Translations under genes and position numbers: made by a program
The notes under the pieces: model-generated
Seen by the model: the letters and a program-made list of their open reading frames with translations, nothing else
The model's database searches: none
What the model was told of the DNA's origin: nothing
Part shown: positions 1 through 20,039 of the stretch, piece after piece
How the letters are laid out: every line of letters starts with the position of its first letter
How positions within the stretch are numbered: the first letter of the stretch is position 1
Assembly: GCA_002104945.1 (NCBI GenBank)
Contig: MCFH01000007.1
Location: 744,001 to 808,000 of the forward strand
From: Piromyces finnis finn
Taxonomy: Eukaryota > Fungi > Neocallimastigomycota
Length of the DNA stretch: 64,000 nt
Direction: 5' to 3'

Positions 1-80
1 TAAATAAGCATTATTGATTTAAAAAAAATTTATTTTTTTTTCTGAATGCTTTTTTTATTTATCAAGAAATTAAAACTTAC

Positions 81-446
81 TTGGCAATATCAACCCAATC
101 TTCTGGTTTCTTGTCTTCTGGATCATCAATTTCCTTTGGTGGATTAACAGATGGCTTGAAGCTTTCAAGAAGGTTACCAGTAGTAGCAGTCTTGTTGTTG
201 ATTTTAATTTCAAAGGTATTATCTGGACGAACAATTAAAGTGTATAAGACAGTAGTCTTTTCAATCTTAGCTTGTGGTGGGGTTTCTAAGTGTTTTTCTT
301 CATATTCACCAGTAATTGGGTTCTTGTGGCGGAAAATGAAGTGAACTCTGTTAGTACTACCACATCTATCTGGACCGAACACTTTTTTTTTTTTATAAAA
401 TTTCAAATTTTTAAATGATTATATAATTAATATTTGTTATACATTT

Positions 447-3273: not shown

Positions 3274-6200
3274 TTAAAGCCAGATACGAGCACAGACAGC
3301 ATTCATCTTATTACAAATTTCATTAACTTCTTCAGACCAAGGTTGATTCCAACATTCTCTAGCTTTAGCATAACATTCATTAGATATATCGGTCTTACAA
3401 GTCCAGTCAGATACACCACAAGAATTCCAATCCTTGGCAAAGAAATCTTCATATTGATTAACTTTTTCTTCCCTATTTTTTTTTTTTTTAAAAAATAATA
3501 ATATAAAATTATTAATTATTTCATTCCATTTATATAAAAAATTGAAAAAAAATATTATTAAATAAAATTATAGATAAAATAAAATAAAATAAAATCATAT
3601 ATAATAAAGATTTATAAACGAAAAAAAAAACAAAGTACAACAAAAAAAAAATAATTCATCTATTGATACTCTACTTGACATAAGTCCAAATTTTAGCACA
3701 AATAACATTCATTTCATTACAAAGGTCACCACTCTCTGGCCATGGAACCTTAATCCAACATTGATTAACTTCGGCATAACATTGATCTGATTTCAATTGC
3801 TTACATTCGTATTCAACATTACCACAACTGTACCAGTCTGTAGCAAAGAAGTCATCAAACCAATGACGATAAACTGTACTATCACCTGTAGCTGGTGGTG
3901 TAGTTGGTTGTGTAGCTGGTTGAGTAGTTGGTTGTGGAGCAGCAGTAGTAGTTGCTTTGGTTGTAGTAGTAGAGGTGGCAGGGGATGAAATAAAAGCAGG
4001 ATTCCATTTAAGAGGTGGACTTAAAGTAATGGATTCTTCATTAGCACCAACCTTAACCCAAACGGTTAATGGATCATTACCAAGTTGTTCAAATTTATAT
4101 TCGGATTGTCTAACAACATCGTCAGGAACGGTAATTGGAAGGACACAATCATGTTCGCTTGGATTATTAATGAGAATTTCGGTGGCATAACCATCTTTAA
4201 CTAAAATCTTATAACTGGCATGACATTGCTCAGCATTGTATCTATCAATACTTAATTGATTCAAATCATCTAACTTTAAAGAAACTAATGGCCAATCAGC
4301 ATATTTAGTGTATTCATTAACAACAGCTTCTACCCAACGTTGTAATAAACTTTGATGTTCGTTACTGTCATCACTTCTCATGTTAGCTTGATGGAATTGG
4401 TGAGCTTCATGTCTTAAAAGCATAATTAATCTTAAGGCACGAGTACTTTCACGTTGTAAAATTTGTTCCCAGGTAGAATCACTGCCAAAATAGGAATGGT
4501 ACATGTAATTGTAAATGTAGGTATCTTCTTCTGGAGTACTGGCATAGAAGTAAATTTCGGTAGGAGAACGTGGAATAATTGGGAAGTTTTCAACATGACT
4601 AGATCCTTTGGTTGTAATGAAAGGAAGGTATGGATTACTATTATTAGTAATATCTGCACGAGAAATATCACCAGTAGCGGAAACAATACCATATTCTCTG
4701 AAAATTTCTAAAGCATCTCCACTATGTAAACCAGATATTTGTGGGGTAATAATAGATCTACCTGACCACCATTCTTCATTAATAAGATCTAATTTTTTAG
4801 CCATTTCAATATTAACACGAATTTCATTATCAACATCACTTCTAGAAGCATTATCCAAGTTTTCATGGGTAAAGGTGTGTGAACACCAAAAGAATTTAGA
4901 ACGGTTTTCCTTATTTTTAAAGTATTGGAAAAGATCATCTTGAGCAAGATATTCATCTGTCCAATTTGGAACGTAATGTTCAACCGGCCAATTATTCATA
5001 CCTTCGCCCATTGGCTTAACATAATCAAGGGTAACATAACGATTACCATCTACTTGAAGTTGATCTCCAACCGGTAATAAACCATTACCATTAATAGCTA
5101 AATCGACATTGAAGGAAGAACCAGCTGGCATTTTCTTAAGAATTTCATCCTTGAACTTAAGATAGTCGTCTAAATCAGCTTTAGAAATACGGAAAGATTC
5201 ACTTCCAAGGGTAATTCCAGATTCATAGGAACTTTCGGTGGAAACACAATTGGTGGAAATGAAAACATCATCAATATGTGGACTGAAAGTAACTCTTCTA
5301 ATACCATTGTAAATAGAACGTGTACCCCAATGAATCCATAAATGATTTAATACAATAGTATCGAGCGACCAAGAAGCAGTTGGAAGGAAGAAACTTAATC
5401 TTTCACGACCATCTTCTAATTTTGCATAGATAGCACCAACAGTTCTTTCTTTAATTTTTTCACAAGCTTCAAAATAAAAGACTGGAGTAGCAATATCTGG
5501 ATTAGTAATGGTGACTGGAGTATGATAGAAATTGTTACTATTAAATTTTTATTCATTTATTTATGTTAAGAATGCGTGTAATTTTTTTAATAAAAAGATA
5601 GAGAATTCATATTAAAAATATATTTATTGTGATAAATATATATATTTAAAAAGAAAATTAATTAGTTATACTTTTTTTTTTTTTAAATTTTATAATAATA
5701 ATAAAAAAATTTTTTTTTCGAAATTTAATTCTTCACTATAAAAAAAACATCTACATAAAACATTATATCATTTCTATTCACTATTCACACGTCAGTATGA
5801 GTATGACTAAGTATATATGTTTTTATTTGAATATAAATATAGAAAAATATGGAAAAATAAAAAAAAAATTTTTTTTTTATCTTACTTTGTAGCAATTGGA
5901 GCATCCTTTTTAATACCAGCTCTTTTATAAATTTCATTAGCTATTTCATTATCTGCACCAACAATTTTTTGAATATAAGTATTACCCCAGGTAGAAGCAT
6001 CATAAATTGAAGTACCGGTAATAGATTCAGGAGTATCACTAAAAGTGACACGTCTTACATTAAAGGTTTGTTCATAAGCATCAAGGTAAGCCCATTGTTC
6101 ATCTGAAAGGGAAGAAGTAAACGTTTTATCAGCAGTTTCAGAGGATAGTTTACCAGAGATAAGGATAACTAAATAATATTTTGGATTTCCTTCTTCATCA

Positions 6201-6412
6201 TAAAGAGATAAATTACCAGTTAAAATATGATCTGTATTATTAATGATAAAGGCATCAAAAGGAATTCCATAGGATTCTAAACCATAAATAGTATTTTGGA
6301 AAGTTTCATCTTCCTGAGTATGTAATACTAATGCTTTTAATCCAATAGTATAAGAATAAACGGATGCAATACAAAGTAATGCAAATGTCAACAGTGAACT
6401 GAATATTTTCAT
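3274..6412 (-). CDS. Secreted Agd3-like (CE18) polysaccharide deacetylase with Thr/Pro linker and two tandem C-terminal 6-Cys modules; exons 6412-5886, 5537-3675, 3472-3274
   Basis: Signal peptide MKIFSSLLTFALLCIASVYS. N-terminal 'KALVL...YGIPF...RRV' region resembles the Agd3 N-terminal domain. Motifs RRVTFSPHIDDVFIST, NGNG, WCSHTFTHENLDNA, PQISGLHSGDAL, LRHEAHQFHQANMR, WVEAVVNEY..WPLVSL and EQLGNDPLTVWV follow the order I recall for Aspergillus Agd3. Both introns are phase-consistent (phase 2). Confidence 0.88.
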
Positions 6413-7254
6413 TTTATATATATAAATAAATGTTTTTTATTTTAATTATCACGAACAATAATTTCTAAACTGTAAAATAAATGAATAAATTCTATAGGGT
6501 ATTATTATTTTTATATAGGTATAATTTATTATTTATATATATTTAATAAATTATAATAAATAAAAAAGAAATGATAGTTTACTTTTTTTTTTTTCTTTCT
6601 TTCTTTTTGTATTAAGAACTTTTGTCTTCCTTTATATATCATATAATATATTTAATAATCTTATTTTATTTTAATAATAAATAAAATTTTATATTTTAAA
6701 AAAAGGTATTTTAGTTGTCAAGATAAATTATTGTATTTAAGAATTTTATTTAATAATAAAAAAAAAAAAAAGAAAAATTTATGATCATCTTTATGTTAAA
6801 ATTAGAAAGTTTTTAGATTCTCTCTATTCACATCGAATTATTATTTATTAAAAGGTATTAATAAAAATTACAAAGTTATTAATAAATAAGACTATTTCAT
6901 TAATAAAATTTAATCGAGAATTATAAATATATGAAATATAAAATAAAATTATTAAAATATATATGTATATATATATAATTATAGAGGAATATCCAAAAAG
7001 ACTAAAAAAAAAAGTAGTTTGTATATTAACTTTTAAAAATAATCATATCAATAACAATAAAACAAATAAAAATTTATTATGTATTATTATTATTCATATA
7101 TTATTACAATAATATAATATAATGTGAAATTTTTTTTTTAAAAAAATAAAAAAAAAAAAAAGAAACCAAAGAGAATTAATATAAAGTTTAAGTAATTCAA
7201 AGTATCCCTTTTAAAAAAAATATGGTTAAAATATAATATTTTTAAAATTATTAA

Positions 7255-7293
7255 TCGGTAAAGTACGAATAATTAATGAACCGACCTACCAAT
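7255..7293. promoter_or_regulatory. Candidate element in the divergent promoter between the two Agd3-like genes (TCGGT-N20-ACCGA inverted repeat plus CCAAT)
   Basis: A locally GC-richer patch near the middle of the 1.6-kb intergenic region: tcggt at 7255-7259, accga at 7280-7284, ccaat at 7289-7293. Function is untested. Confidence 0.2.
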
Positions 7294-7323
7294 CCCACTT
7301 TAATTAATTATTAATTTAAAATT

Positions 7324-7370
<47 letters not shown>

Positions 7371-8019
7371 TAAAAAGAAAAACCAGAAATAGTTTAATAA
7401 TTATAAATTAGTGATGAAAAGTATAACTATATTATAAAGATGTAAATTTTATTGAATATATAAATGTTTAATCCATAACCTTTAATATTTTTTTTAATTT
7501 TAGTTGAAAACATTAAATTAAAAAAGTTTCCCAAAGTAAATTCTTTATAAAGTTTAAAAAATTCATTTCAAGACAATCCTATATATATTTAATCATCATT
7601 AAGTCATTATAATGAATGATATAATTACCTTTAATAATCTTTATTATAAAGAGGAGATGAGATAAAAAAAATTATTTATTAAATAAAACTTCATATATCA
7701 TTATTCATTAAATAATAAAAAAAAAACTTTAATTGATAATAAAAAAAAGAAAAAGAATTAAAAAAAAAGTATCATTTATATAATTAACAATTAAAAGTTG
7801 ATTATTTATTATATAATAACAATTTAGTATTTTTTTATATTGAATTCATTTTAAAGTTTTTTTTTATTCATATTTTTTTTAACAAGAAAAATTTTTTTTT
7901 TTTTGTTTATCTTTTTTCTTTTTGGACTATACCTTTTTTCACCTAGTCATACTATATACATCGACTAAAATAAAATAAAATAAAATTATATATAGAAGAA
8001 ACAAAATTTTTTAAAAAAA

Positions 8020-11000
8020 ATGTTTAATAAACTGTTTAATATGAAGCTTTTAAAAAAAGTTTCATTGTTAGGATCCTTAATTTTAATAAATCCTCCCAGA
8101 TGTTATGGGCAAGATGTCATAAAAATAGGAATGAGAGCTTTAGTTTTATCAACAGAAAAACCAGAAACAGTTTTATCCTCTTTAGCATCCTATGGTATTC
8201 AATATGATAATTTAATATATAATTGTGAAAATCCATTAGAAGGAGAATTATACCTTCTTGATGAAACCACCAAAGATCCAAAATATAACATGATTATTTT
8301 AGCAAGTGGTGCAATGAAGACCAATTGTTATGGATCTGTGGTAAGTGCATTAAGTGATGATCATTGGAAAGCTTTAAGAAATTATGAAAGTAAATATAAT
8401 ATTAGAAGAGTAACTCTTAATGCATCACCAGAAGATGCTTCAGAAATCGGGGTTCAAGCGTATAATGATAAAATTGAAAAGAAATCATTATTACCTATTT
8501 ACGCTTCAAAAAACAAATTTACCAATCATTTATTTAATAATGCAGGAATTCTTGAAACTGCTCCATTTAATACTCTTGGGTAATTATTAAAATTATTTAA
8601 AAAAAAAAAAAGATTTTATTTTTCATATTATATTTTATCTCTTTATATATATAGTAATATTAATTTACCCTTGACCATTTTTTTCTTCTCTTTTTTTTTT
8701 TTTTTTCTTTGGTATATTAATAATGAATTTAATATAATCATTATCATTAATAACACGTCTATGTGGTCAAAAAAAAAAAAACAATAAAAAATTGGTTTTA
8801 ATATATTAATATGGAATGATGGAATTATTATAAATAATGCTTTGACATTTTAGAATTCGTCATGATTTTGCAAAAATTAACAATTCAACTATTTCAGCAC
8901 CAGTATTAAGCTACAATATTAAGAGCAAAAAAGATGGAGAAGCCATTGCAGCTGTTTACTCAAAATTGGAAGATGGTAATGAAAGATTAACTTTCTTTTT
9001 ATCTAGCAATGGAAGTATGTACTTTTTAAAATATATATAAAAAAATAGTATCATCACAAATAATATACCTATACATATACATTATGAATAATGAATTTAA
9101 AAAAAAAAAAGTGAATTAATAATTTTTTTATAATTTTTTTTTCTACTAAATGATTAAATAATTATTTTATTAAGGAAATCCAACCAGTTTAATTATTAAT
9201 CACCTTTGGATTCCATGGGTATCAAAGTATATATATTCTGGTTTTAGAAGAATTTACCTTTCCCAACACATTGATGATATATTTACATCTGAAAAATTAA
9301 TTCCAGTTTCTGATAAATTTTATAACGTAAATACATAAAATATACTATATATATTTTTTATAATAATATTGGATTAGTATTATATAATAGTATTACAGTA
9401 ATAGTATACATTATATATAGACATTTTTTAAAAATTTTTATAGTAATTATTATTATTATTTTATTTTTATTAAATCTTATTTTATATATATATATATTTA
9501 TTTTTTTTTTAAATAGAAAAATAAATTTTATAAGAATACTGTTGCCGATTTTGATAATCTTGTTCGTTATCAAAATGAAATTTTGACTAAGATGCCAGCT
9601 GGATCAAGTTATCATTTAGAATTAGTTTTCAATGGTAATGGTATTCTTGATGATTCTAGGTAATTTTTTTTTTTTTACATTTTCTATCTACCTTTTTTTA
9701 CTTTTATTATTATACTTGATAACTTTGATTTAATTAACCTAAATCCCCTCCCCCTTTTCTTTATATTAGTTATAATTTAGATATTGAAGAAGATGAAGGA
9801 GTTTCCAATAATTTCATTAAACCAAAAGGTACAGGTGTATGTAAATGGCCTGAATATCCATACCCAGCAACTTGGTTAGAATCTGAATTAGATAAAAATA
9901 GTTTATTTAACTTCTTTAAGGAAAAATATGCCCATGAAAACTTTTATTGGGCCTCTCATGGATTTACGCATCAATCTTTAAATAATGCCACCTTCACTGA
10001 TGTTGCTAATCAAATTGAAGTTAATAAAAAAATGGCACTTCACCTTGGTATATCTGATAAAGGTATTTTTTCTAGACATGTCATCATTCCACCACACAGT
10101 TCTGGTTTACATAATGGAGATGCTATTGATGCCTTTATCAAAAATAATATTGAAGTAGCTTTTGGTAATATTCATCGTGAAGATATTACAAATGATGAAA
10201 GTAATGAAAAGGCAGCCTATATGGCATGGAGAACAACATTAGAATCTAGTAATGTTGATAATTATCCTGTTATTCCACGTATCCCAACCATGCTTTTCCG
10301 TCAATGTTCCACTCCATCTGAAAATACCGTTAAATACAATAAAATGTTTGAAGGGACTGGTTTGATTGCCTCCTTTGACGAAATTTTAAATAGAGATACA
10401 CAACAAGCTTTACTTTCCCTTTTCCAACTACGTCACTACCCCTTCCAATTCCATCAAGCCAACCTTCGTAGTGCTGATCTTCCAAATCAAAAGAGTCTAG
10501 TGGAACAATGGACAGAAAAATTGGTTGAAAAGTACAATCAATATGTTAAATGGCCAATTGTTTCTGTTAAATCGGATGATATTAGAACCTCCTTCCTTGA
10601 ACGCGAAAAGTTTGAAAATTGTGACTTGACCCAACAATTAATTTACAATGGTACTCATATCATTGCTGTTTCCTTAACCGCTACAAACAAATCCTGTAGA
10701 ATTCCAATTGCTTTACCAAATGGTATAAGTATAGTTGAAAATGATCTTTTCCTTCTTAAAGATATTCTTACCGTAGAACAAGTTAATGAATCCGATCCAA
10801 TTACTCTTTGGGTTCATCTAAATAATAATTCTGTAGCCTTAAATTTTGAACCAGCCATTCCATGGGGTGAATATAAAGTTAATACAAGATACGGAACATT
10901 AGCCAAGAAGTCTACTACCACCGAAGACGATTATTATTTCGATAAGGAAAGTAAAACTAAAGGAAATTATACCGCACATGATATTATTACCAATGTCATC

Positions 11001-11231
11001 ACAAATATCTTAAAATTCAATTTGGAATCCAATAAATTAAGGAATGAACTTGGCTATACCTCTGAACAATTAAGAAATGTTAAAGCCTTAAATGAATTAG
11101 AAAAATCACGTTTGTATGCTGAAGGTTCTGGTAAAATTCAAGAAAGACGTAAAAAGGATAAGACCATTAAAAAGTATTTAAAAGATAATAAAGATGCCTT
11201 TTACAAAGCTATTGAATATAATTTTGAATAA
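8020..11231 (+). CDS. Second secreted Agd3-like (CE18) deacetylase with a charged C-terminal tail; exons about 8020-8579, 8854-9014, 9175-9326, 9535-9659, 9770-11231
   Basis: Spliced reading gives MRALVL...SYGIQYD...RRVTL, KLEDGNERLTFF, NHLWIPW...GFRRIYLSQHIDDIF, MPAGSSYHLELVFNGNG, FYWASHGFTHQSLNNATF, PPHSSGLHNGDAI, LRHYPFQFHQANLRSAD and DPITLWV. This is colinear with the minus-strand paralog. Confidence 0.87.
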
Positions 11232-15168: not shown

Positions 15169-18100
15169 ATGTTTGAAATAAAAATTCCATTTCCTGAAGT
15201 AATGGACTCATTAATAATATTATATAATAAAATTCAATTCAACTGTTCAATTGATTTTATAATACTATTGGTCATCATATTCTTTAGATTTTATTCTCCA
15301 CTTTATCAAAAAATAAAATCTATAATAACAGATTCCTATGGTATTGAAATTGATAATAGACAAAATACCACAACTAAAAAATGGATAAAGAATAATAATA
15401 TTAATAATAATACCAAAAGTATAAAAAAATTGAAAAATGTCACAATAGTGCTTTGTGATAACAGCATAGTTTTATTTTTAATGATTTCAATAAAATATCT
15501 TATATCTTGTATAAAACAAGGATTTATAAATGATACCATAATATCAATATATCAAATGCTATCTTCATTTTTTATTCTCTCCATAAAATTTTTAAAATAT
15601 TTTATAATAAATGGTATATCCCTTTTCCTTTTTCAAACTGCTTATGTCATTACCTTCTCCTTATTCAAAATAGGACAGTCAAAAAAAGTTCATCAAAACT
15701 CTCTCTTCAAAATTTTCATTCTTCTACTGTTATCATTAAATTGTCAACAGTCATCGTTGAGTTCCGGTTTAAATAATAATAACACAAATTGTATTATTCC
15801 AAAAAAGAACCATAATTTTTTATCATCTTCTATTGATGAAATTCTATTTTTAACAACAGTGACAACAACAACATGGATGTATCATTTAAAACAATACAAC
15901 CCATTTACAAATATTTTAACGATACCAAAAGTTTATGCACAAGAAATCATAAACAATGAAATTCAAAATACAAATGAAGAACCTAGCGTGATTTATGAAA
16001 CCTTTTCAAAAAAAGATATTGGTAAATAGTTTGGTTTCAATAAAAAAAAATATTCATGAAAAATAAACAGAATATTGTACAACTAATATAATATTAAAAA
16101 TAATAGTGATAGTGGTATTGGTAATGATAATAATAATAGTTAATAGTTGTAACAATAACAGAAGTAGTAGTAGTAGTAATAATAATAATAGTTAATAGTT
16201 GTAACAATAACAGAAGTAGTAGTAGTAGTAATAATAATAGTAGTAATAGTAGTAGTAGCAGTGATGATAATAGTTGTAACAATAATAAAAGTAGTAGTAG
16301 TAATAGAAGAAGTAGTAGTGATGATAATAGTTGTAACAATAATAATAGTAATAATAATAGTAGTAATAAAAGTAATTATAATAGTAATAATAATAGTAGT
16401 GGTAGTAACAATAACAAAAGAAGTAGTAGTGATGATAAAAAAAATAGCCACGAAGAAATAAAAAATGTTTCTATAATTAGTATAATTATAATAATAATAG
16501 AATAAACAATTTTACATATAAATTTTAACAAAATGTTTTTTTTTTATATACATACATTAATATATACTTTTATATATATATATATATTTATAGTATTATC
16601 CATTCAATCTCAATGTTTAGAAAGAAATAGAATATTTTTATCTGAACAGGAAGATCAAATTAAATTTGAAATGTTATTAAGTCAGCCTCCAAATTCAAAT
16701 ATTAATGTGACTTTTATTAATGATCAACCGGATTTATTTACAGTTGAACCAAAAAGTATACTATATAAAAGTGCCTATTCTTCTGTTACCACCAAAAATA
16801 ATACCGTCATTAATATAGTTGATAATCATTATAATCTCATTCAGTATTTTAACATAAAAACATTCAAGAATAATGGAAGCGCAAAATTAATGTTTAATAT
16901 AAATACCGATTTAAATAAGGTGTATGAATATGAAAATAACAAGGTTGTGGAGGAACAAACTAGTAATAATAATAATAGTTTAAACCGATTAATTATTGAT
17001 AAATCTGTTAGTAAGCCACTGGAAGTGAAAGCAACATCATCAAATGTTGGAACAATGAATACCTTTTTAATTTTATGGATTGTCCTTTTTATGTTTAGTA
17101 TAGGATTATCTCTTTCAGGAAATACGATTAAGGGTTTATATTCATGGAAAAGGTTAAAACCTTTCATTTGTGGTTACGTGTGTCAATTAATTATTAATCC
17201 ATTAGTTGCTTTCATTCTCACCAAAATATTTAAACTCTCAGAATACATATCTCTTGGAGTCATCATTGTTGCTGCTAGTCCTGGTTCTTTTATCGCCCCT
17301 GTATTTACATATTACTTGGGAGGAGATAGAGCTTTAGCCGTAGGACTTTGTTTAATTGCTACTATTTTTGGTAGTTTTACTTTTCCATTTACCATATGGC
17401 TCTTTTGTATTGTATTAAAAATTAAAATTGAAACTTACATTCCTATCTGGGAAACTTTTTCTTTATCGGCAACACAAATTATACCATTGGGCATCGGTTG
17501 TGTCATTCTTCATTTTAAACCAAATTGGGCTTCTAAACTAAGAAAAGGTTGTCCTCTCTGGGCTATTGCTATCATCCTAACAAGTTTAATTACCTCTATA
17601 AAAAATTATGGACAGATCTTCATTAATAGTTGGAAAGCCTATTCTATGCCAATTATTTTGGGTTTAATTAGTTACATTATAGGGTTTGTGGTTCCTAGGG
17701 TGTTTGGAATGAATAACCAACAAGTTCGAGCCATATGTTTTAACACAGGATTACAAAATTCTCCATTAGCTTTAACCGTAATTCAGGTTTTAGGTATGCC
17801 AAGTTGTGGTCAATTAATGTCCCTTGTTCCTCTTCACCATTCTCTTTGGACCGTGGTAGAAGGTGTGATCATCGCCATTGCTATGTTCTTTTTATTCCCA
17901 ACGGACGTGAAAGCAATCGAAGAAAACTCCGAATTTCCAATAATGCTTACAACTAGAAATGAAGAAGAAAATAAAGCCATTCTACAAGACGACTACAGTG
18001 AAAACTACTCTAGTAATATGTCCATGATGGAAGACAATGTGTTGGATATTTCAGATATTAATATACACCAACATTTAACATACGATACTAATCCTGCAAC

Positions 18101-20039
18101 ACCAACCTCAATGAAGCAACCTACCTATAAATATTGTTCTGGTTCCCCCACAACAAATCATTCAACCCTTTCTATTCCTCGTCAATCAAATTCCCCAAAT
18201 TTGACCGGATCACCAACCATGAATATCATTAGAAAGGATAGTGTTAAAAGCGGTCAGTCCACCGTAGCCCAGAATTCACTACGTGATACAAATGGCATTA
18301 CCATGAAAAGAAATAGTAATCTTTCCAATATTACCATTCTTTCCTATGGAAATAATAACAAACTTTCACCAATATTGAAAATCACCCCTACAACGCATCA
18401 AAGAAAAAGTAGTACAACGTCTACCATTAAATTTAAGCAAATTCCTACATCCTCTCTCCACACGAAAACACCAATTTCTCAAGCAAGTAGTAGTAATACA
18501 AATTCAGAGTTAGGCCTAGAAATAATTGGTCTTCCACCTCACGATCCTTCTTCTAATACTAATACGGACATTAAAATTAAAAAGGATCGTCAAAAAGATC
18601 ACAACCCTGTCAATTCTACTAAAGAATGTGAAAGTCAAATTCCATCCAAGGGAATTCAAAATAAAAATAAAAGAAGATCAAGTTCACCTACCCTTCCAAG
18701 TACACCCTACCAAAACCAAAATAATAATAAAAATGTATTATTGAAAGGGGAAACTAGAAATACAGTAAAAAAGGAAAATGAAAGCCCCGCTAAAGAAATT
18801 GAAATTGAAAATGAAAATCAAGAAGAAATGCCTATGCATTCGACAAATAAAAAGAAGGAAGAAAAAATATTAAATAATAATATAATGGAAAAAGACAAAG
18901 ACGGTCATAACAAAGATCAACAAAAACCTCCCAAAACTTCTTTAACCCATCATTCTCCAATCTATTTATCACAAGTTATGAATAAGTATTTACCTTTGGT
19001 ATTTAAGAAATCAACACCCGACGTTTCAAATTCTCCTTCTCCTCCTCCTCCTTCTTCGCAAAACACTTTACCCTTAAATTCAACACTGTCTTCCAATACC
19101 TCATCCTCCATGAATCCTACTTTATCCAATGCATTAAAACCTACCTTGACCAACTCTAGTTCAAAGAATACATCAAGCCCGACATTACCAAATCCTACTC
19201 TATCAATACCCACTTTATCCATTGCATTAAATTCTACTACACCAACACCCACTTTACCAAGTTCATCAAATCCTACTTTACCAACATCCACTCTACCAAA
19301 TTCATCAAATCCTACTACACCAACATCCACTTTACCAAATTCATCAAATCCTAATTTACTAAACCCTACTATATCAAATCCTACTACACCAAATTCTACC
19401 CCATTAAATTCTTCAACTCCAAATTATAATAATAAAGGTCATTCTTCCTTAAATTCACCTAACCTGGATCCTAAAGCTTGTTTAAATACAGATAATGATA
19501 ATGTCAATTTAAATTCAAATTCTTTTCCAAGCCATACTTTTAAAAGTAATATTGTTAATTATTACTTAGGGGAACCAGAGTTAGATAATAATAAGACACT
19601 ACATGGACAAATGAATCCATTAGATCAATTAAATAAAAATAACTTCACCAACAACCATGTAGATCAGCAGAGCCTTATAGATTTTGATACCCAACCCGTG
19701 AAACTATTCAATATAATTAGTTCACCGAGTTTTTCTGCTAATACAAATAGTACAAATCATACAAACCATACTCTTCTCACCAATCATAATAGTATTCAAA
19801 GTCTGAAAAAGAAAAAGAATAGAGTTTATCGTACAGATACCATTCAAACATTTGAAACCGCCAACTCTAATCAATTTAATTCGTTTGTATACGGTGATGG
19901 TAGTGTAAAAAGTATTAAGGAAGATGATCTTGTTGAAGAAAGTGACGGAGAAGATGTTGATGATGATGATGAAATGTTTAAAGAATGTTCCTTTGAATTT
20001 CAAACCAAAGGATTTGAAGGTTTAGGTAAACCTAACTAA
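15169..20039 (+). CDS. SLC10/BASS (bile acid:Na+ symporter, SBF) family transporter with a long N-terminal extension and a low-complexity Ser/Pro/Asn C-terminal tail; join(15169..16021,16594..20039); start codon uncertain
   Basis: The two ORFs join through a phase-1 intron (G|GTAAAT at 16022, TTTATAG| at 16593). SBF-type transmembrane core: MFSIGLSL...FICGYVCQLIINPLVAF...LGVIIVAASPG...YYLGGDRALAV...IPLGIGC...IGFVVPRVF...RAICFNTGLQNSPLAL. Confidence 0.85.
16130..16440. repeat. Intronic compound minisatellite (TAGTTGTAACAATAA cores interspersed with GTA/ATA triplets)
   Basis: The core tagttgtaacaataa recurs four times (about 16144, 16195, 16271, 16329), including a near-perfect ~51-bp tandem duplication. 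It lies inside the SLC10 intron. Confidence 0.85.

Follow-up and report, generated by a model that had tools for sequence, protein, structure and literature searches.

The DNA analysed here, a stretch of 64,000 nucleotides from the anaerobic gut fungus Piromyces finnis (contig MCFH01000007.1, positions 744,001 to 808,000; hereafter "the window"), carries at positions 3274-11231 two intron-containing genes that are transcribed divergently: gene A on the minus strand, encoding 862 amino acids (aa), and gene B on the plus strand, encoding 825 aa. Both encode proteins with the domains of Agd3, the Aspergillus enzyme that deacetylates the polysaccharide galactosaminogalactan (GAG). An original prediction, made from the sequence of the window, had placed here a head-to-head pair of Agd3-like deacetylases of family CE18 in an anaerobic gut fungus, and the host assignment proved right. 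Every intron in the two genes is of the GT-AG type, and their exons are as follows.

5886-6412, minus strand: gene A exon 1, signal-peptide-like N-terminus and first part of CBM87 (CBM87_Agd3, E = 6.7e-21; donor GTAAGA, phase 2; 100% identity to BCR36DRAFT_280357)
3675-5537, minus strand: gene A exon 2, remainder of CBM87, CE18 domain, Agd3 C-terminal domain, Thr/Pro-rich linker and six-cysteine (6-Cys) module 1 (Agd3_CE, E = 2e-79; Agd3_C, E = 1.9e-08; PDB 6NWZ, E = 1.5e-74)
3274-3472, minus strand: gene A exon 3, 6-Cys module 2 and stop codon, absent from the public model (in-frame intron 3674-3473, GTAGAG...ATAG)
8020-8579, plus strand: gene B exon 1, signal-peptide-like N-terminus and first part of CBM87 (CBM87_Agd3, E = 1e-17)
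8854-9014, plus strand: gene B exon 2 (five-exon model, with GT-AG boundaries and an open frame)
9175-9326, plus strand: gene B exon 3, with motif CM1 (QHIDD; Pfam match in the scan of the fungus's own genome at C200:753508-753657, profile positions 15-64)
9517-9659, plus strand: gene B exon 4 (five-exon model)
9770-11231, plus strand: gene B exon 5, motifs CM2-CM4 and Agd3 C-terminal domain, ending in a charged tail (about 120 aa) that is conserved (PDB 6NWZ, E = 7.4e-44; open reading frame (ORF) 10032-11228: Agd3_CE, E = 2.5e-45; Agd3_C, E = 6e-06)

The two genes are 34-37% identical and their start codons lie 1607 bp apart, in agreement with the divergent paralogues and spacer of about 1.6 kb that had been predicted; the left boundary at 3274 was also right, as it takes in exon 3 of gene A. 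In both genes the first intron is in phase 2, the two positions differing by no more than one codon in the alignment, and the gene B model has the same length as its P. finnis entry at NCBI, BCR36DRAFT_580921 (P0201). The G+C content of the region is about 13% in spacers and 30-35% in exons. Orthologues of both genes were found on transcript-sized contigs without introns. The queries of the sequence searches were single exons or the database entries P0001 and P0201; the joined coding sequences served only to check frame and length.

Domains and active site of the two proteins

A Pfam scan of the exons identified CBM87_Agd3 (PF25116), Agd3_CE (PF25115) and Agd3_C (PF25117) in the same order in A and B, with E-values ranging from 2e-79 to 6e-06 and all passing the curated cut-offs; the database entries P0001 and P0201 hold the same three families. 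For Agd3_CE, where the cut-off is 27.6 bits, gene A scored 267.7 bits and gene B 155.5 bits (last exon only), and in the scan of the P. finnis genome the corresponding scores were 298 and 228 bits. When gene A and the last exon of gene B were compared with solved structures using phmmer, the sole match was PDB 6NWZ, Agd3 of A. fumigatus. The profile searches thus bear out the predicted Agd3-like CE18 identity, with three Agd3 domains far above the cut-offs in each gene.

In Agd3, D377 acts as the catalytic base, D378, H510 and H514 form the metal triad, R613 coordinates the base, and H668 is the catalytic acid (PMC7229062). Alignment to 6NWZ indicated that all six residues are conserved in A; in B, H510, H514, R613 and H668 align within exon 5, and D377 and D378 correspond to the HIDD of exon 3. 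Both genes contain the motifs HIDD, HTFTH or HGFTH, and FHQAN, as well as N-termini that, on reading the translations, resemble signal peptides, all of which had been foreseen. By these sequence features A and B are true Agd3-type members of CE18/CBM87, their catalytic motifs intact.

One position of the active site differs. M666 of Agd3 is conserved without itself being catalytic, but its alanine mutant is inactive (PMC7229062), and this position is Gln in both A and B, while the residues of motifs CM1-CM4 in A are otherwise kept. In an alignment of 69 sequences, Gln occupies the M666 position in 34 of 39 sequences from Neocallimastigomycota, and Met occupies it in 18 of 19 from chytrids and in all 10 from ascomycetes. 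Within this alignment, then, a Met-to-Gln substitution adjacent to the catalytic His marks the anaerobic-fungus lineage, a detail that is new here.

Overall, A and B resemble A. fumigatus Agd3 in their three-domain layout, in motifs CM1-CM4 with their six catalytic or metal-binding residues, and in their apparently secretory N-termini, at 30-33% identity over about 500 residues. They depart from it in the Gln at M666 and in their C-termini, where A adds the Thr/Pro linker and two 6-Cys modules predicted to be helical hairpins and B adds the charged tail. They also lie outside any GAG cluster, in a family of about 16 genes, unlike the single agd3 of the A. flavus GAG cluster.

The entry BCR36DRAFT_280357, which is the public model of gene A, has 797 aa and ends at a TAG (3671-3673) that overlaps the splice donor GTAGAG. 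Removal of the 202-bp intron that begins there leads in frame into exon 3, which shares 80% identity with the final 65 residues of the orthologue P0003 (861 aa). This orthologue is encoded on a 2.9-kb contig (L044) by an uninterrupted ORF with no intron, and because of that size and structure we take the contig to represent a transcript. The in-frame exon and the 861-aa orthologue therefore indicate that the public model is truncated; on this sequence comparison it lacks its last exon, a correction that is new here.

Downstream of the Thr/Pro linker, gene A encodes two 6-Cys modules (3277-3471 and 3674-3880, minus strand) that are 47% identical to each other. The module is about 60 aa long, with six invariant Cys and conserved Trp residues, and occurs in at least 30 copies in the genome, including copies on contigs C178, C124, C156 and C35. 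Neither the module nor four other proteins that carry it had any Pfam match. An AlphaFold model of the module is a helical hairpin (predicted local distance difference test, pLDDT, 89), for which Foldseek returned no match in the PDB at E ≤0.001; because the six Cys are invariant, disulfides probably staple the hairpin. The charged tail of gene B, in which the Pfam scan found no known domain, is conserved in Anaeromyces and unique to the B clade: over its full length, tail included, exon 5 shares 60% identity with P0068, the Anaeromyces orthologue.

Origin of the pair and its intergenic region

The arrangement of the two genes extends beyond P. finnis. In Anaeromyces robustus the order is B orthologue, 1.6-kb spacer, A orthologue, calnexin, and Piromyces sp. 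E2 keeps the order calnexin-A-B and, as in P. finnis, has an SBF transporter on the B side. In maximum-likelihood trees the A clade (support 100) has members from Piromyces, Orpinomyces and Anaeromyces. The B clade (support 100) has a long stem, measuring 0.8-1.1 changes per site, and is sister to all remaining members of the main anaerobic-fungus CE18 clade (support 99). That main clade was placed among chytrid and ascomycete sequences, within the eukaryotes; the chytrid sequences lie nearer to ascomycete Agd3 and keep Met at the M666 position.

The comparison with bacterial and ascomycete CE18 that had been proposed along with the prediction grouped the pair with fungal sequences, and seven bacterial sequences from Bdellovibrionota and Acidobacteriota, a small sample drawn from a motif-pattern scan, formed a clade of their own (support 99). 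Recent transfer of the pair from bacteria was ruled out, given the absence of bacterial proteins from the best 120 matches, the GT-AG introns and the separate clade formed by the small bacterial sample. Synteny in three genomes and the trees therefore point to an old duplication whose copies have stayed head-to-head, and not to recent acquisition from bacteria. As a separate observation from metagenome-assembled genomes of Bdellovibrionota and Acidobacteriota (L055-L062), predatory Bdellovibrionota of the Bacteriovoracaceae and Silvanigrellaceae encode full-length CE18 homologues that are 24-31% identical and have fungal-like CM2 and CM4.

The region between the genes and the neighbours of the pair have the following features.

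6413-8019, no strand: divergent intergenic spacer, 1607 bp, 13% G+C, between both start codons
7516-7533, minus strand: spacer block 1, an 18-nt exact match to the Anaeromyces spacer, located about 490 bp 5' of the gene B start codon (shared-k-mer test against shuffles; alignment)
6620-6633, minus strand: spacer block 2, a 14-nt exact match to the Anaeromyces spacer, located about 220 bp 5' of the gene A start codon (shared-k-mer test against shuffles; alignment)
77-406, minus strand: single-exon calnexin gene, kept in synteny with the pair (Pfam Calreticulin, E = 1.6e-43)
16533-20039, plus strand: SBF/SLC10-type transporter gene (Pfam SBF, E = 2.3e-26)

The calnexin and SLC10 transporter genes that the prediction had named as flanks are thus both recognised by Pfam. 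An ORF of 286 aa between gene B and the transporter gene (15169-16029, plus strand) had no Pfam match. Conservation of the spacer was assessed between P. finnis and Anaeromyces, the assembly of Piromyces sp. E2 having a run of N there. The spacer is of nearly the same length in A. robustus (1603 bp), and blocks 1 and 2 are colinear in both species, each of them closer to one gene of the pair. The remaining spacer is 87-90% A+T and did not align to that of Anaeromyces.

Pathway genes elsewhere in the genome

A six-frame scan of the whole P. finnis assembly (56.46 Mb, 232 contigs) yielded 23 matches to Agd3_CE, representing about 16 genes, two of which are A and B. A 2025 review lists 16 CE18 and 19 CBM87 for P. 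finnis, with counts taken from MycoCosm (PMC12586995), and among the species in which Bamford et al. (2020) had noted homologues of Agd3 are "anaerobic herbivore symbiotes" and Gonapodya (PMC7229062). Some CE18 paralogues in Neocallimastigomycota carry dockerins (PF02013), CBM1 or CBM18, none of which is present in A or B themselves. Matches to GH114 (PF03537), the family of the Aspergillus hydrolase Ega3, numbered 25 in at least 24 genes, the best scoring 250.7 bits. In these fungi GH114 is among the most abundant expressed families of carbohydrate-active enzymes (CAZymes) and had no assigned role, a connection with GAG having been speculated upon (Gruninger et al. 2018; PMC6054980). Both the presence of CE18 and the abundance of GH114 in anaerobic gut fungi are therefore already in the literature.

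Two local arrays were observed among these families. Four CE18 genes, three of them near-identical, form a tandem array at G000:C113:138-20352 (L002, L004, L005, L006); they form a highly diverged clade (stem 1.1-1.5 changes per site) and have Met at the M666 position, but their CM4 reads FHEGN, not FHQAN. On another contig, about ten GH114 genes are packed into 32 kb (G000:C178:783351-815117).

Using Gtb3 from the A. flavus GAG cluster (gtb3, agd3, ega3, sph3) as the query, we identified in P. finnis three giant synthase genes (about 2900 aa) that are Gtb3/PelF-like and 32-33% identical to the query (C200:1152675-1161434, C200:1202303-1211224 and C146:about 674617-683513). The multi-pass membrane region of Gtb3 also aligns to the P. 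finnis synthases. The two on C200 (L038 and L039) are intronless, encode 2919 and 2973 aa, lie 50 kb apart, and are on the same contig as the pair, about 400 and 450 kb downstream of it; these two genes were scanned with Pfam and have DUF3492 and GT4 at the C-terminus. The C-terminal 760 aa of the synthase are 91-98% identical in the six closest matches, the one named being Neocallimastix lanati (92%), 48-57% identical to many chytrid sequences, and 33-36% identical to Aspergillus Gtb3. Judged by these identities, the conservation of the synthase C-terminus is unusually strong. Relatives of the synthase also occur in ichthyosporeans and Corallochytrium.

The spacer blocks were searched for in the same genome. 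The 14-mer core of block 1 is single copy, and the 14-mer of block 2, AAAGGAAGACAAAA, has four genome copies vs three for its reversed control. One of the four lies at G000:C200:1152229-1152242 (plus strand), about 485 bp upstream of, and in the sense orientation to, one Gtb3-like gene; none of the further CE18, GH114 and synthase loci examined has the 14-mer upstream. It could be a shared cis element or a matter of chance, and is a weak lead.

For the supply of UDP-sugars we found a single GalE gene, on contig C188 (TIGR01179, 348.5 bits), a candidate for activity on UDP-N-acetylglucosamine (UDP-GlcNAc). Aspergillus requires GH135/Sph3 for GAG; in the P. finnis genome neither the PF12138 profile nor an A. 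flavus Sph3 exon detected it, and neither search had a positive control. The genome-wide check for GAG genes that accompanied the prediction thus found Gtb3/PelF-like synthases (three) and GH114 (at least 24), together with one GalE as a candidate counterpart of Uge3, and did not find Sph3.

No GT4, GH114, GH135 or epimerase gene adjoins the pair, and scans for CE18, GH114 and synthase genes found no further pathway gene within 100 kb of it, in line with the predicted absence of neighbouring GAG genes; the distance is 110 kb to the closest GH114 gene and about 400 kb to the closest synthase. Elsewhere, the smallest CE18-GH114 distances are 18 kb on C168 and 27 kb on C199, which we grade as approximately chance level (two pairs below 30 kb vs about 0.4 expected), and both local and loose clustering were ruled out. 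The pair has no local GAG cluster around it because the pathway genes are scattered over the genome. The claim to novelty made with the original prediction did not survive: the genome has about 16 CE18 genes, Agd3 homologues of gut fungi are already published, and with pathway genes present elsewhere in the genome the novelty is reduced to cluster dispersal.

Set beside the Aspergillus GAG cluster (uge3, sph3, ega3, agd3, gtb3), P. finnis has counterparts in three Gtb3-like genes, about 16 Agd3-like genes, at least 24 Ega3-like GH114 genes and one GalE; unlike in that cluster, the genes are dispersed, Sph3/GH135 was not found, and the deacetylases and hydrolases are massively expanded. A closer parallel comes from two chytrids, Dinochytrium kinnereticum (L046) and Phlyctochytrium planicorne (L047), in which 2-5 kb separate a CE18 gene from the gene of a giant synthase with DUF3492 and GT4, the latter being 51-52% identical to the P. 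finnis synthase; in Dinochytrium, an epimerase-family gene also lies nearby, about 8 kb away. We found no published description in the literature of such a GAG-type mini-cluster outside Dikarya. The P. finnis genes share the CE18 family and the synthase lineage with these clusters, but are unlinked and have Gln in place of the chytrid Met at M666. This adjacency is the best available evidence that CE18 and this type of synthase cooperate in zoosporic fungi. Finally, the bacterial Pel machinery, which includes PelA, PelF and PelG, offers a parallel in the partial de-N-acetylation of an alpha-1,4-linked N-acetylgalactosamine (GalNAc) polymer, which A and B would also perform, and in the PelF-type DUF3492 and GT4 of the fungal synthase (PMC13254593); the deacetylases differ, being CE21 (PelA) and CE26 (PelA-DA of B. 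cereus) in bacteria as opposed to CE18.

A candidate endogenous polymer and its alternatives

The reading we favour, with somewhat better than even confidence, is that A and B are working Agd3-type de-N-acetylases whose role is to mature a GAG/Pel-like polymer of the fungus's own; the Gtb3-like synthases would produce it and GH114 hydrolases would trim it, the genes of the pathway being dispersed. The two proteins would be secreted, metal-dependent polysaccharide de-N-acetylases like Aspergillus Agd3, with CBM87 forming the substrate cleft. Their most likely substrate would be an endogenous GAG/Pel-like polymer rich in alpha-1,4-GalNAc, which the giant Gtb3/PelF-like synthases would make from UDP-sugars supplied by GalE; partial deacetylation would render the polymer cationic and adhesive, and the many Ega3-like GH114 hydrolases would trim it. 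A and B form an old head-to-head pair of paralogues, kept beside calnexin across genera of anaerobic fungi within a family that expanded in this lineage.

Several observations weigh against this reading. A residue required in Agd3, M666, is changed in A, in B and in most of the anaerobic-fungus sequences (34/39), which raises the possibility of an active site adapted to some other substrate. The lone GalE is no more than a candidate for specificity towards UDP-GlcNAc or UDP-GalNAc, and Sph3/GH135 was not found in the genome by the searches described above, which lacked a positive control. The approximately 16 CE18 and at least 24 GH114 genes, some of them with dockerins, CBM1 or CBM18, far exceed the apparent need of one self-made polymer. 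The only link of A and B to the synthases specifically is the 14-mer that they share, possibly by chance. Finally, the searchable literature yielded no biochemical report that anaerobic fungi contain polymers of galactosamine (GalN) or GalNAc.

Some of these features would also suit enzymes directed outward, with A and B acting on polymers of foreign origin in the gut, for instance the Pel-type or other GalNAc/GlcNAc exopolysaccharides of bacteria, and so loosening or re-charging the biofilm of competitors on fibre. The strong expansion of CE18 and GH114, the abundant expression of GH114 without a known role (PMC6054980), the dockerins (PF02013) or CBM1 that would locate some paralogues on plant fibre, where bacterial biofilm grows, and the lineage-specific change of M666 to Gln are all consistent with such a function. 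We consider it unlikely, however, given that the three Gtb3-like synthases are intact and strongly conserved in the C-terminal 760 aa among the closest anaerobic-fungus matches (91-98%); synthases so retained and conserved argue for an important self-made polymer. Further, CE18 is clustered with the synthase in chytrids, neither A nor B carries a dockerin or CBM1, and from what is established for Pel and GAG the Pel of a competitor would be expected to become more adhesive upon deacetylation, not less.

It is also conceivable, but in our judgement quite improbable, that the pair modifies a different endogenous amino-sugar polymer, converting chitin to chitosan or acting on another GlcNAc glycan, with the specificity of CE18 having shifted from alpha-1,4-GalNAc. 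Such a shift could account for the Gln beside the catalytic acid throughout the main clade, the chitin-binding CBM18 on some paralogues, the long branch of gene B (stem 0.8-1.1 changes per site) and the negative Sph3 searches, themselves without a positive control. Chitin deacetylation is, however, a known CE4 activity, and the CBM87 cleft domain is retained in the pair. GH114 and Gtb3-like partners, the other signature genes of a GalNAc polymer, co-occur in the genome, and the sole CE18 activity characterised so far is specific for alpha-1,4-GalNAc (PMC7229062). Gene B alone might have lost or changed its enzymatic role and become a binding or structural protein, leaving A as the only working deacetylase; its long-stemmed clade, its CM2 of HGFTHQ in place of HTFTHE, the variation at M666 (Gln in Piromyces, Lys in Anaeromyces) and the clade-unique charged tail of about 120 aa without a known domain would fit such a change. 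We regard this as very unlikely, since the six catalytic or metal-binding residues are kept in both B orthologues and the clade is conserved in at least three genomes and present on transcript-sized contigs.

If the favoured reading of a self-made GAG/Pel-like polymer is placed in a wider frame, we tentatively suggest, at rather less than even confidence, that zoosporic fungi, including the gut fungi, inherited from the fungal ancestor, or from an earlier one, a Pel/GAG-like system (a giant PelG-PelF-type synthase, CE18 and GH114) whose product would be a cationic exopolysaccharide of alpha-1,4-GalNAc. The Neocallimastigomycota would have dispersed the cluster and expanded its deacetylases and hydrolases, with the Met-to-Gln substitution and with targeting by dockerins, CBMs or 6-Cys modules. 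The result would be a tunable system of glue and release for rhizoids on plant fibre, of which the A/B pair may be the oldest core.

The pair is an ordinary member of a catalogued family, and its value lies in the genome-wide picture together with two small corrections, one to the gene A model and one concerning the active-site substitution. Anaerobic gut fungi colonise plant fibre by means of tightly adhering rhizoids, and to our knowledge the glue that attaches these rhizoids to the fibre is not known. The scattered set of synthase, deacetylase and hydrolase genes provides a testable candidate for it, namely a cationic polymer of the GAG/Pel type. The wider question that the pair raises, whether gut fungi and chytrids possess a GAG-like glue, is likewise open to test, and the findings suggest that GAG-type polymers in fungi may be much older than the work on Aspergillus implies.

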